In this document: one piece after another, positions 38,201 to 41,200 of the stretch
Layout of the letters: every line of letters begins with the position of its first letter
Position numbering within the stretch: the stretch's first letter is position 1
Origin: Macrostomum lignano
Lineage: Eukaryota
DNA length: 64,000 nucleotides
Assembly: GCA_002269645.1 (NCBI GenBank)
Contig: NIVC01002369.1
Span: 1 to 64,000, forward strand
Direction of reading: 5' to 3'
Made by a program: the position numbers and the translations under genes
The notes under the pieces: model-generated
The model's database searches: none
What the model was told of the DNA's origin: nothing
Seen by the model: only the letters and a program-made list of their open reading frames with translations

Positions 38201-41200
38201 CCCTTTTTAATAGATAGATAGATAGATAGATAGATAGATAGATAGATAGATAGATAGATAGATAGATAGATAGATAGATAGATAGATAGATAGATAGATA
38301 GATAGATAGATAGATAGATAGATAGATAGATAGATAGATAGATAGATAGATAGATAGATAGATAGATAGATAGATAGATAGATAGATAGATAGATAGATA
38401 GATAGATAGATAGATAGATAGATAGATAGATAGATAGATAGATAGATAGATAGATAGATAGATAGATAGATAGATAGATAGATAGATAGATAGATAGATA
38501 GATAGATAGATAGATAGATAGATAGATAGATAGATAGATAGATAGATAGATAGATAGATAGATAGATAGATAGATAGATAGATAGATAGATAGATAGATA
38601 GATAGATAGATAGATAGATAGATAGATAGATAGATAGATAGATAGATAGATAGATAGATAGATAGATAGATAGATAGATAGATAGATAGATAGATAGATA
38701 GATAGATAGATAGATAGATATTCATAAGGCAGTTTGAAACTGCAAACCACGCACTCGGAAGATATTGAAGGTTACCAGTTGTCGAATGTTCGAAAAAAAC
38801 CGATATTTCGGCCCAGACTGGGCCTTCGTCAGGGTTTATTTATTCGGGTTTAAAAACAAATATATTGGCAGTGAAGTTATTGTAACATAATTTCAATATA
38901 TATATATGCTACTTTTGGGGGTGCACTGAGCAGTGTTGAGTAAAGATGTGTACGTATAATTAGTTAAAAACGTGAGTTGAAGCACGCTGATTGGTTAAAG
39001 ATTGGCAGCTTAAAGCCTTGCACAAAAAATATTAAAGATGTTAGGTGCTATAGAAAAACAGATTTAGAGCGTAGAAGTGTATGAATAAGCATCTTGAAAA
39101 GTTCAACAAATAAGTTATTTACGCCCGTAGAATTGAGAACAAATATTAAATTAAAACAGAGCACTGAGAACTTTTCAAAAAGAAGTGCAAGTAAATAGAT
39201 GTTATTACATAAACAGTAAATAAATTGAGTCGCCAGGCAGGCCACTAGTTGCAGTTGGCGGCGTCTGGTCACAGATCGCCGCCTGCACAGCCCCTGGTCA
39301 CAGGCGACTGGGCACTGCAGATCAGTTGAGGCTAGATTATCAGTAGTAGTAGCACTAGTAGTTGCAGTAGTAGCTCGTAGTAGTAGTAATGGAAGTAGTA
39401 GTAGTACAAGTATTAGTAGAGTAGTAGTAGAGCAGTCGTAGGCGTAGTCGTAGTAGAGACGTACTGGTAAGCAGTTATTTGAAGTAGCCAGGCAGGCCAC
39501 TAGTCGCAGTTAGATAATTAGATAGATAGATAGATAGATAGAAAGATAGATAGATAGATAGATAGATAGATGGATAGATAGACAGACAGATAGATAGATA
39601 GATAGATGGATAGATAGACAGATAGATAGATAGATAGATAGATGGATAGATAGACAGATAGATAGATAGATAGATAGATAGATAGATAGATAGATAGATA
39701 GATAGATAGATAGATAGATAGATAGATAGATAGATAGATAGATAGATAGATAGATAGATAGATAGATAGATAGATAGATAGATAGATAGATAGATAGATA
39801 GATAGATAGATAGATAGATAGATAGATAGATAGATAGATAGATAGATAGATAGATAGATAGATAGATAGATAGATAGATAGATAGATAGATAGATAGATA
39901 GATAGATAGATAGATAGATAGATAGATAGATAGATAGATAGATAGATAGATAGATAGATAGATAGATAGATAGATAGATAGATAGATAGATAGATAGATA
40001 GATAGATAGATAGATAGATAGATAGATAGATAGATAGATAGATAGATAGATAGATAGATAGATAGATAGATGGATTCCATTTAGACCTGGCACTCCAGTT
40101 GGCAATCTACAGACGAATGAGAGACTCATGCAGCTCCCTGCCGCAGCGGTCCCTAGGCAAACAGGGCACTTGAGCTCAGAGCTCCGCCAAGTCAAATATT
40201 AGGCAGGTCTCAAAGAGAGAAAAATGAGGAACTTGCTGGAAAGCCTCAGCGCTGTAAAAGAACAGACAAGCATTTCCACGTCTTTCATTTCCAGTATTTT
40301 TGTCTTGATCGATGAACCAGTTCAAAAGCACACGCTGGGCATTTTGAGAGTTGATGCTGTTTGAGGAGCGGAGAGTCTTACAAAGCTTGTTGCATCCGCT
40401 GACTGGGGCTCTCAGAATCGCGGGTACTTCAGGCAAGCCAACCCAGGGAAGGACCTGCTCAACTGCCTATCTTATATCGATCTGAATTTACTAAGAAAAT
40501 CTGGGCCAGTTTAATCAAACATCCGGGCACACAAGTTTAAACAAACATCGCGGGTACTTCAGGCAAGCCAACCCAGGGAAGGACCTGCTCAACTGCCTAT
40601 CTTATATCGATCTGAATTTACTAAGAAAATCTGGGCCAGTTTAATCAAACATCCGGGCACACAAGTTTAAACAAACCTACTCTCTTTGAGACTAGGCAAA
40701 CAGGGCACTTGAGCTCAGAGCTCCGCCAAGTCAAATATTAGGCAGGTCTCAAAGAGAGAAAAATGAGGAACTTGCTGGAAAGCCTCAGCGCTGTAAAAGA
40801 ACAGACAAGCATTTCCACGTCTTTCATTTCCAGTATTTTTGTCTTGATCGATGAACCAGTTCAAAAGCACACGCTGGGCATTTTGAGAGTTGATGCTGTT
40901 TGAGGAGCGGAGAGTCTTACAAAGCTTGTTGCATCCGCTGACTGGGGCTCTCAGAATCGCGGGTACTTCAGGCAAGCCAACCCAGGGAAGGACCTGCTCA
41001 ACTGCCTATCTTATATCGATCTGAATTTACTAAGAAAATCTGGGCCAGTTTAATCAAACATCCGGGCACACAAGTTTAAACAAACATCCAGGCACACCAG
41101 TTCAAACAAACATCCGGGCACACCAGTTCAAACAAACATCCAGGCACACCAGTTCAAACAAACATCCGGGCACACCAGTTCAAACAAACATCCAGGCACA

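Follow-up and report, generated by a model that had tools for sequence, protein, structure and literature searches.

We analysed a 64,000-nucleotide stretch of Macrostomum lignano DNA (contig NIVC01002369.1, positions 1 to 64,000, hereafter the window) and found a 790-bp non-coding unit on its minus strand (38721-39510), inserted between two (GATA)n arrays. With moderate confidence, we consider this unit a solo genomic copy of a non-coding Macrostomum retroelement family that relies on a Penelope-like element (PLE) for its mobility. The unit has a modular anatomy, carries a hammerhead of the PLE class and lacks coding sequence. A further copy, inserted in a separate GATA array, shares its 3' end but not its 5' end. 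We infer mobilisation in trans, priming at the microsatellite and a dimer-dependent cleavage of the hammerhead.

Anatomy and coding content of the unit

A sequence-only reading of this DNA had delimited about 790 bp between GATA runs longer than 500 bp. Tandem Repeats Finder agreed with this layout and gave flanking arrays of 511 and 565 bp. The features of the unit, together with those of a PLE used for comparison, are as follows (window coordinates).

38210..38720, strand not applicable: (GATA)n array on the element's 3' side, (ATAG)n, 127.8 copies (128 units), 100% matches, Tandem Repeats Finder
38721..38801, minus strand: 3' tail, 81 nt, downstream of the predicted cleavage site
38797..38837, minus strand: minimal type-I hammerhead, with core boxes and helices (features per PMC4209133)
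38853..39227, minus strand: AT-rich non-coding body, 92% identity with the second copy (L005)
39228..39510, minus strand: 5' VNTR region, GC-richer, one 255-nt unit plus 29 nt of the next
39511..40075, strand not applicable: (GATA)n array on the element's 5' side, (TAGA)n, 141.2 copies, 96% matches, Tandem Repeats Finder
18828..18871, minus strand: comparison minimal hammerhead, outside the unit, in the 3' UTR of an intact PLE
19297-21585, minus strand: ORF of this intact PLE, within the window

On the element strand, the 3'-side array is (TATC)n and begins immediately past ...CUUAUGAA, while in the 5'-side array the variant units cluster close to the junction. The 3' tail ends in a hairpin, GCAGUUUCAAACUGC (38743-38729), which the second copy, L005, retains through a U-A to U-G change. 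Also kept in both copies are a CCAAT motif (38994-38990) and a TATA-like run (38908-38894), located 60-150 nt upstream of the hammerhead. The 5' region contains a 29-nt direct repeat (39228-39256 and 39483-39511, 93%), and each unit of this variable-number tandem repeat (VNTR) combines a stretch resembling (ACT)n with a GGCGGCG...CGCCGCC hairpin. In L005, this module is present as 2.9 copies of 214 nt, and the tandem part of the element (units of 214-255 nt) is devoid of hammerhead. The 29-nt terminal repeat was also considered as the 30-40-bp tail of PLEs, an assignment that was dropped since the L005 copy shows that this repeat reflects the VNTR periodicity.

The longest ORF of the unit (39048-39500, minus strand, GTG start) would code for 150 aa of low complexity and had no match in Pfam, so the earlier statement that the unit has no credible ORF was upheld. 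A tblastn search with 121 PLE proteins detected no PLE coding remnant in the unit (best E=0.04), and ARAGORN predicted no tRNA-like SINE head. Comparison of the unit with the window (blastn) revealed no further copy in this stretch. The sequence-only reading had placed the unit in a protocadherin intron, a location that is putative: in the window the cadherin ORF stops at 31931, and the ORFs scanned over 32-45 kb included no cadherin exon.

The hammerhead motif and its relatives

The motif of the unit follows the type-I box order CUGANGA ... GAAA ... UH and reads, on the minus strand, AAACC-CUGACGA-A-GGCCCAGUCUGGGCC-GAAA-UAU-C/GGUUU, where the slash marks the predicted cleavage site. In helix I, AAACC (38837-38833) pairs with GGUUU (38801-38797). 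The core from C3 to A9 is CUGACGA (38832-38826) and the next base, A38825, is unpaired. Helix II extends from G10.1 (38824) to C11.1 (38810) over 6-7 bp, with the G10.1-C11.1 pair present, and is followed by GAA at 38809-38807 (GAAA box 38809-38806), by A15.1-U-A-U16.1 (38806-38803) and by C17 at 38802. Helix III is thus replaced by the palindrome AUAU (A15.1-U-A-U16.1). Cleavage would take place after C38802, that is between 38802 and 38801. The 3' junction lies 81 nt from this site, a distance that becomes 77 nt when measured from the helix I end and then matches the figure of about 77 nt in the sequence-only reading. The minimum-free-energy fold (-17.9 kcal/mol, z = -2.65) comprised helix I, helix II and an open core, with helix I open and loop 1 undefined. 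All four published hallmarks of PLE minimal hammerheads were present, namely the base after A9, the G10.1-C11.1 pair, a long helix II and the palindromic AUAU, and the short helix I also agrees with the published feature list (PMC4209133).

Such a motif could be a chance match in a unique spacer between GATA arrays. The bare core pattern CTGANGA-N4-30-GAAA is common in the window (14 observed versus 6.8 expected), and the Rfam hammerhead models (type I, II, III, HH9, HH10) gave no match at the gathering score over the whole window nor at E<=10 on 951 nt. Rfam hammerhead models include helix III, which is absent from minimal hammerheads. Weak Rfam matches to DicF, mir-34 and InvR (E 0.8-4.8) were attributed to chance. 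We composed a full descriptor after the motifs had been seen. It required the core boxes and UH, allowed 0-1 extra base, set minimum lengths of 4 bp for helix II and 3 bp for helix I, and accepted either a palindrome or a hairpin as helix III. This descriptor matched exactly two sites in the window, the motif of the unit and that of the PLE at 18.8 kb. In contrast, 300 dinucleotide shuffles of the window yielded a mean of 0.01 matches, with three shuffles having at least one and none having two. Moreover, the motif is conserved at 50 of 51 positions in the second copy, and PLE 3' ends elsewhere show this frame too, with helices that covary. Hence, a chance origin is effectively refuted. The sequence features support the view that the unit carries a genuine PLE-type minimal hammerhead, the cleavage of which is predicted.

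The same motif class was found in PLE 3' regions at 18.8 kb and in L006 and L010. A metagenome scan for the hammerhead frame returned 22 loci. Half of them (11) belong to one hammerhead family. In nine of these, helix II has 6 bp or more, and the remaining two are variants broken by a mismatch. The other 11 loci are chance matches with a helix II of 1-2 bp. In two loci of the metagenome family, a PLE reverse transcriptase (RT) match is found on the same strand, some 1.1 kb upstream. Across three families (the unit, the 18.8-kb PLE and the metagenome family), for which sequences were picked on the core frame only, the core is invariant and helices I and II covary fully, with compensatory changes at five helix II and three helix I positions. 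Covariation was counted by anchored parsing because the MAFFT alignment of the hammerheads mis-registered helix II. A hammerhead-frame scan of viral contigs and a scan of prokaryotic genome contigs for a unit-specific pattern each gave 0 matches. Four distant PLE loci (L001-L004, 39-61% identity) harbor a U3-A8 variant in place of a CUGANGA-type hammerhead and are therefore uninformative on the family of the unit.

The parallel drawn earlier between the unit and the 18.8-kb PLE was confirmed for the strand, the frame and the distance to the microsatellite, and similarity ended there. Both motifs lie on the same strand and have the common frame CCCUGACGAAG...CGAAAU...AUC/GG, and cleavage in the PLE motif is predicted after C18832, about 78 nt from a CT/AG-rich microsatellite. 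The 3' module of the unit mirrors the layout of the PLE 3' UTR, with 507 versus 543 nt and a hammerhead core starting at nt 393 versus a hammerhead at 427. A local alignment of these two regions was no better than those of shuffled sequences except for an 11-nt core, which supports the assignment of the unit to a family other than that of the 18.8-kb PLE. The latter has a CX5CxxC motif before its GIY-YIG domain and is located in an AG-rich repeat. No autonomous partner sharing the 3' end of the unit was found in the window, the only PLE there having an unrelated 3' UTR and a different microsatellite. Exact-protein look-ups of the window PLE ORF and of P0002 indicated that neither is on record.

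A second copy and the origin of the unit

A search for other copies identified one in another M. lignano contig (L005, NIVC01001007.1, roughly 10010-11146, about 1137 nt), located between (TCTA)n (9243-10009) and (TATC)n (11147-13673). Since this copy lies in an unrelated GATA array, the unit is not a single copy with no family but a member of a GATA-associated family, as the sequence-only reading had proposed. The 3' junction is at the identical position in both copies. The two 5' ends fall at different points of the VNTR, whose copy number is not the same either. Between the two copies, which are about 9-17% diverged, the hammerhead is the best-conserved segment (50/51), followed by the body (92%), the VNTR (86%) and the tail (82%). 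In L005, helix II of the hammerhead contains a C-A mismatch and the motif folds only weakly. There is one hammerhead per locus, and no pLTR or tandem arrangement was seen in either copy. Searching 20 kb of L005 with PLE proteins (tblastn) uncovered no PLE coding remnant at E<1e-3. A gene model, P0121, lies on the sense strand of the L005 copy, in an annotation built from an RNA-seq-guided transcriptome (PMC5730564), and a homology search with P0121 retrieved only P0121 itself. A common 3' end, variable 5' ends and the lack of an ORF are expected of a non-autonomous PLE derivative and were observed here in two copies. Of note, only these two copies are available and differences in VNTR copy number could postdate insertion. 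These points count against the PLE-dependent reading, as do the lack of a partner in the window, of a pLTR or tandem arrangement and of recognition by Rfam, the weak L005 fold and the poor in vitro cleavage of published minimal hammerheads.

The two copies could also have spread between GATA arrays without retrotransposition, through ectopic recombination, gene conversion or segmental duplication, in this duplication-rich neopolyploid genome. Indeed, the Mlig_3_7 assembly of M. lignano has 180-312 Mb of duplicated sequence (PMC5730564), the long identical microsatellites on both sides provide ample homology for exchange, and the known copies number only two. However, the sequences beyond the GATA arrays are unrelated between the two loci (word size 9, E<1e-3), and a differing 5' boundary combined with an identical 3' boundary is the mark that reverse transcription leaves when it starts at the 3' end. 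The ribozyme class carried by the element is also retrotransposon-specific, and the divergence of the copies contrasts with the blocks of at least 95% identity that characterize assembly redundancy. We consider such a spread improbable.

Alternatively, the unit could be a dead-on-arrival fragment of a 5'-truncated autonomous GATA-targeting PLE, with a 3' UTR of more than 1.1 kb that includes the VNTR. This is the usual interpretation of solitary minimal hammerheads in flatworms, most of which were ascribed to truncated PLEs by Cervera and de la Pena (PMC4209133), an attribution that counts against a non-autonomous element. Three of the distant PLEs (L001, L002 and L004) have a hammerhead-like motif about 900 nt past the stop codon, so PLE 3' UTRs of about 1 kb exist, and variable 5' ends are what 5' truncation is expected to produce. 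On the other hand, neither copy (790 and about 1137 nt) retains a remnant of the RT or endonuclease (EN), which favors a non-autonomous element over a truncated one. Both copies begin within the same VNTR module, and the 507-nt 3' module by itself is already comparable in length to the complete 3' UTR of the window PLE (543 nt). In addition, the 5' VNTR is unrelated to PLE protein, giving a composite layout typical of non-autonomous retroelements. Truncation is thus a possible but rather unlikely origin of the unit.

The description of the unit as retrozyme-like could not be sustained in the strict sense. Transcripts of a true retrozyme would be cut at the hammerhead and circularised, and the small circular RNAs would serve as the template for retrotransposition. 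A recent preprint argues that retrozymes derive from PLEs as non-autonomous elements (bioRxiv 10.64898/2026.07.22.740005), and the L005 copy appears to be transcribed. Nevertheless, the hammerhead is minimal, without loop-loop contacts, and is not of the canonical retrozyme type, and the tandem part of the element has no hammerhead. With one minimal hammerhead per copy of 0.8-1.1 kb, excision of unit-length RNA would be impossible from the window and L005 copies. A true retrozyme is therefore highly unlikely.

The reading that we prefer is a PLE-dependent non-autonomous element. On the minus strand it has four modules. A 5' VNTR (214-255-nt units) comes first and is followed by an AT-rich body of about 375 nt, then by the PLE-type minimal hammerhead and finally by the 81-nt tail with its small hairpin at the end. 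The GIY-YIG-endonuclease/RT protein of an autonomous GATA-targeting PLE, absent from the window, would nick a (GATA)n array. The 3' end of the element RNA, probably with read-through UAUC repeats, would then anneal to the nicked repeat, and target-primed reverse transcription would copy this RNA, leaving the 3' end fixed and the 5' end variable. Both a microsatellite insertion bias and non-autonomous PLEs with partner-shared 3' ends have been documented (PMC8557442). Because helix III is missing and the only palindrome is AUAU, the hammerhead would be active only when two copies pair, for example where master copies give multimeric or pseudo-LTR (pLTR) transcripts, and would be essentially inert in a solo copy such as the window unit. 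The dimer dependence evoked in the sequence-only reading comes from the literature on minimal hammerheads, for which cleavage in vitro was poor even as dimers (PMC4209133).

It was also considered that the element, or its partner, could have seeded or extended the GATA arrays, if the telomerase-related RT of PLEs reiteratively copied a UAUC template at the RNA 3' end. Both long GATA arrays in the 84 kb examined hold a copy and the 3'-side array of the window is 100% pure over 128 units, two observations offered for this idea, which we regard as doubtful.

Significance and comparison with known systems

The unit is an instance of a repeat family of an already described kind, well explained by published biology and without surprise. 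It adds Macrostomum, a free-living flatworm model with transgenesis, to the hosts of PLE-type minimal hammerheads. The element is also compact and non-coding, has a fixed 3' end and lies inside a tetranucleotide repeat. The literature examined on PLE targeting mentions (TA)n, (CA)n and (C)n, and does not mention (GATA)n. If the family were abundant and a GATA-targeting PLE partner were found, the system would be tractable for studying the microsatellite choice of the PLE endonuclease/RT as well as the role of weak dimer-dependent hammerheads in the PLE cycle.

The closest similarities are with the minimal hammerheads of metazoan PLEs, first described in the Cercyon PLEs of the flatworm Schistosoma mansoni (Cervera and de la Pena, 2014, PMC4209133). 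They have in common with the unit the type-I topology, the CUGANGA/GAAA/UH core, the additional base left unpaired after A9 and the G10.1-C11.1 pair. In both cases helix II spans 6-8 bp and helix I 4-5 bp, and there is no helix III beyond the palindromic 15.2-16.2. These hammerheads are mostly solitary, near the 3' end or in the pLTR of PLEs (PMC4209133). Here the host is a free-living macrostomid and the motif is found in a non-coding unit of 0.8-1.1 kb with a 5' VNTR, a (GATA)n setting and no pLTR duplication.

Among PLEs, the non-autonomous elements of the Chlamys clade (MRC1 of Chlamydomonas; Craig et al., 2021, PMC8557442) resemble the unit in being non-coding and in presumably borrowing the PLE enzyme. 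They share a 3' end with their partner and belong to a clade with a microsatellite insertion bias. They differ in having pLTRs, multicopy head-to-tail insertions, identified partners and no canonical hammerheads, while both copies of the unit are solo. The Neptune, Nematis, Naiad and Hydra clades, with a CX2-5CxxC linker, prefer (TA)n (PMC8557442). As in these clades, the unit is inserted inside a simple repeat, so target duplications are unreadable, and the 18.8-kb PLE with its CX5CxxC motif and AG-rich repeat likewise resembles them. Unlike them, it occupies the tetranucleotide (GATA)n, which is not listed for those clades (PMC8557442), and has no endonuclease gene of its own.

The metazoan non-LTR retrozymes (Cervera and de la Pena, 2020, PMC7229834; Li, Clavereau and Pollet, 2026 preprint) are likewise non-coding and AT-rich, have a type-I hammerhead and are presumed to be mobilised by PLEs. 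Their monomers, roughly 170-400 bp long and arranged head to tail, all bear a hammerhead of the canonical, efficient type and give rise to circular RNAs (PMC7229834). The unit, in contrast, has a single minimal hammerhead per locus in 0.8-1.1 kb and an internal tandem repeat that lacks one. The Sm-alpha SINE-like repeats of Schistosoma (cited in PMC4209133) are reportedly short non-coding flatworm retroposons with a canonical type-I hammerhead near their 5' part and a pol III-type structure. The unit differs from them by its lack of a tRNA-like region and by a hammerhead placed near the 3' end, but both are non-coding elements that carry a type-I hammerhead.

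The unit and its GATA flanks

The unit, a 790-bp non-coding element with a hammerhead near its 3' end, lies between two GATA-type arrays, in a window that also carries an element of the Penelope-like (PLE) group and several host genes:

19297-21585, minus strand: PLE ORF of 762 aa, with LPKIHK, YIDD, a CX5CxxC linker and a GIY-YIG domain with CCHH residues
29298-31931, plus strand: cadherin ORF
38210-38720: (ATAG)n array, 128 units, 100% matches, perfect (Tandem Repeats Finder)
38721-39510, minus strand: the unit, 790 bp between both arrays
39511-40075: (TAGA)n array, 141 units, 96% (Tandem Repeats Finder)
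50470-52686, minus strand: condensin subunit 2 ORF
In the window: dynein heavy-chain exons

The G+C content of the unit is 40%, compared with 48% for the window; its G+C-richer end is at 39200-39350 and its middle is AT-rich. The longest ORF (150 aa, GTG-started, low-complexity) had no Pfam match, no PLE coding remnant was found in the unit by tblastn with the window's PLE protein and 120 relatives (best hit only E=0.04), and ARAGORN predicted no tRNA-like region. The sequence-only reading had described a non-coding segment of about 790 bp with GATA runs on both sides and a hammerhead, and the two arrays, the ORF and tblastn nulls and the motif itself bear this out. No cadherin exon was found among the ORFs scanned at 32-45 kb. 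The antisense position in a protocadherin intron suggested by the sequence-only reading is thus far putative.

Tandem repeats abound in the window, for which Tandem Repeats Finder listed 70 rows, among them a (TCTG)n array at 43857-44783. This agrees with the simple and tandem repeat content of 15% reported for M. lignano (PMC5730564) and, taken with the PLE and unit matches, points to M. lignano or a close relative as the source of the window. A 397-bp direct repeat (40153-40549 and 40692-41088, 100% identical), intermixed with 130-bp and 26-bp tandem repeats, begins 78 bp past the GATA array; since it has no counterpart beside the second copy of the unit, it is not part of the element. Two 722-bp direct repeats (23023-23744 and 27214-27919, 97% identical) lie on either side of two arrays, one of 2.8 kb made of a 23-bp satellite and another with an 18/166-bp period, an arrangement that looks LTR- or pseudo-LTR (pLTR)-like.

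The hammerhead and its relatives

On the minus strand, the unit carries the type-I hammerhead AAACC-CUGACGA-A-GGCCCAGUCUGGGCC-GAAA-UAU-C|GGUUU. Helix I has 5 bp, with 4 more possible, helix II has 6-7 bp closed by G10.1-C11.1, and a single unpaired A separates A9 from G10.1. Helix III is missing, its place being taken by the self-complementary A15.1-U-A-U16.1. C17 is at 38802, and the 3' tail beyond the predicted cut would be 81 nt long. The minimum free energy fold of a 59-nt segment forms exactly helices I and II and leaves the core open (-17.9 kcal/mol, z = -2.65). An AAUAAA sequence shares bases with the 5' strand of helix I.

The core pattern by itself is common in the window (14 matches vs 6.8 expected). 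A full descriptor, which asks for the core boxes, 0-1 extra base, at least 4 bp in helix II, a helix III that is palindromic or a hairpin, UH, and at least 3 bp in helix I, matched exactly two sites in the 64 kb, that of the unit and 18867 on the minus strand; 300 dinucleotide shuffles gave a mean of 0.01 hits and never two, a result that is supportive but not independent, because the descriptor was written after the motifs were seen. Neither motif was detected by the Rfam hammerhead models. These models include a helix III, which both motifs lack.

The second site belongs to an apparently intact PLE (18754-22500, minus strand), bracketed by AG/CT-rich microsatellites of the same type at 18275-18753 and, on its 5' side, 22402-22498. 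The nearest named relative of its protein is an M. lignano protein (82% identity over 47% of the query). Its 543-nt 3' UTR contains AGCC-CUGACGA-A-GAAAUUUAAUUUC-GAAA-UAGCUCGUAU-C|GGCU, with predicted cleavage after C18832, about 78 nt from the CT/AG-rich microsatellite. This is the only hammerhead found in the element, and no upstream pLTR copy was found. The two motifs have the frame CCCUGACGAAG...CGAAAU...AUCGG in common; beyond it, the 3' regions of the unit and the PLE align no better than shuffles. The parallel drawn in the sequence-only reading, in strand, extra-A core, AUC triplet and distance to the microsatellite between otherwise different sequences, holds. The layouts are also alike, the hammerhead core starting at nt 393 of 507 in the 3' module of the unit and at nt 427 of 543 in the PLE 3' UTR. 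Directly upstream of the PLE RT/EN ORF and overlapping its start, a 334-aa ORF (21533-22537, minus strand) shows a faint GDSL/SGNH-hydrolase match (PF13472, E=0.0014, under the Pfam cut-off) and could be a PLE ORF1 with an esterase-like domain.

JGI/ENA metagenome contigs were scanned for the shared frame with helix II left free, which returned 22 loci. Half (11) were GC-rich contigs with a 'helix II' of 1-2 bp, a number near the rough chance expectation. The other 11 formed one hammerhead family, GUUGCC-CUGACGA-A-GUGUAUUAAAUAUACAC-GAAAUAUC|GGCAA, with helix II 6 bp or longer in nine and one-mismatch broken variants in two; two loci of this family have a PLE RT match on the same strand, some 1.1 kb upstream. 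Among the unit, the 18.8-kb PLE and the metagenome family, five positions of helix II and three of helix I change on both sides, whereas the core, the extra A and G10.1-C11.1 are invariant. A chance origin of the motif is not tenable.

Three distant PLE loci (39-41% identity) conserve another motif, CCC-UUGAGAA-A-GAC...GUC-GAAACGUC|GGG, about 900 nt past the stop codon (L001, 4975-5010; L002, ~4380; L004, ~3830), which fits the U3-A8 core covariant of Schistosoma PLEs (Cervera and de la Pena, PMC4209133). Two hammerhead-like relics, 122 nt apart, are present at 54466-54660 (plus strand) of the window, one with an intact CUGAAGA box and AAAA for GAAA, the other with GAAA and a broken first box. 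Their helix II covaries (GCACAG/CUGUGC vs ACACAG/UUGUGU), and they may represent what is left of a small tandem hammerhead repeat, now decayed, from a third family.

A second copy at another locus

The spurious 150-aa ORF of the unit matched one protein, an M. lignano 'hypothetical protein' (BOX15_Mlig001677g1, 140 aa, no Pfam domain). Its contig, NIVC01001007.1 (GCA_002269645.1; locus L005), has a full copy of the unit at ~10010-11146, flanked by (TCTA)n (9243-10009) and (TATC)n (11147-13673). No similarity to the window flanks was found outside the arrays, so this copy is at a different locus; the unit is not the single copy without a family that would have spoken against the sequence-only reading. 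No PLE coding remnant was found anywhere in the 20 kb of L005.

Both copies have their 3' junction at the identical nucleotide. Their 5' ends are different, the window copy beginning at a 29-nt motif (AACUGCGACUAGUGG...) and the L005 copy about 74 nt deeper in the repeat unit of a variable-number tandem repeat (VNTR), which has 2.9 units of 214 nt at L005 vs 1.1 units of 255 nt in the window. Identity is 86% in the VNTR, 92% in the body, 98% (50/51) in the hammerhead and 82% in the tail. Recombination between GATA arrays is a less likely means of spread, because the 5' boundary differs between the copies and their flanks are unrelated. Both long GATA arrays in the 84 kb examined contain a copy (window 38210-40075; L005 9243-13673), which raises the question of whether the element inserts into such arrays or gives rise to them. 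The 3'-side array is 100% pure in the window and 2.5 kb long at L005.

The protein is a spurious ORF inside the VNTR (L005 10001-10423, plus strand), useful only as a sign of transcription. Its gene model is on the element's sense strand, and the GenBank annotation came from an RNA-seq-guided transcriptome from which transcripts overlapping annotated repeats were removed (PMC5730564), which suggests that transcripts come from the L005 copy and that the classified repeat library did not include the family. A CCAAT motif and a CATATATATATATTG run are kept in both copies (window 38894-38994, minus strand; L005 10870-10975), 60-150 nt upstream of the hammerhead. This region is a candidate pLTR-type promoter, which could put the hammerhead at the extreme 5' end of the transcript.

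Comparison with PLEs and retrozymes

The fixed 3' end, the variable 5' ends, the lack of an ORF and a ribozyme class specific to retrotransposons indicate a retroelement copied from its 3' end. Judged from sequence, the unit joins a 3' module that matches a PLE 3' UTR in size and layout to an unrelated 5' VNTR, a composite structure typical of non-autonomous retroelements. The chief alternative is a PLE truncated at its 5' end whose 3' UTR exceeds 1.1 kb and includes the VNTR; PLE 3' UTRs of about 1 kb do exist in L001 and L004. Non-autonomous PLEs with 3' ends common to their partners are documented for Chlamys, as is PLE insertion into microsatellites, attributed to the CX2-5CxxC linker (PMC8557442). 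The window's PLE has a linker of this type and sits within an AG-rich repeat. Taking all this together, we favour reading the unit as a solo copy from a family that is non-autonomous, mobilised by a PLE and integrates in (GATA)n, with integration presumably primed on the repeat.

Minimal hammerheads were defined in PLE flanking repeats by Cervera and de la Pena (2014; PMC4209133), whose work began with the flatworm Schistosoma mansoni. Helix II is long in these motifs (7-8 bp) and helix I is short (4-5 bp), and features recurring outside the authors' descriptor are consensus families full of covariation, a base between A9 and G10.1, the G10.1-C11.1 pair and palindromic 15.2-16.2 (PMC4209133). 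The motif of the unit shows all of these; the extra-A core noticed from the sequence alone is thus present, as a published hallmark and no oddity. Most such motifs are solitary and 'probably related to truncated PLEs', and their cleavage in vitro is poor and confined to dimers or trimers (PMC4209133). With just a 4-bp A-U palindrome for dimerisation, the hammerhead in a solo copy is expected to be essentially inert; any activity would arise in transcripts of master copies, either multimeric or pLTR ones.

In contrast, metazoan non-LTR retrozymes are tandem monomers of ~170-400 bp, each with an efficient canonical hammerhead, that yield circular RNAs (PMC7229834; 2026 preprint). Each copy of the unit has one minimal hammerhead and its internal tandem repeat has none, which makes a retrozyme of this kind very unlikely; from the sequence of the two loci, unit-length excision would be impossible at either. 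Of the earlier interpretation, the GATA-associated family stands with the L005 copy and its non-autonomous nature is the favoured reading, while 'retrozyme-like' in the strict sense is not supported. No paper linking Macrostomum with PLE hammerheads was found in the literature searched. A PLE-type minimal hammerhead on a short non-coding retroelement in a microsatellite is a known type of element, and what is modestly new here is the (GATA)n association, the 5' VNTR and the host.
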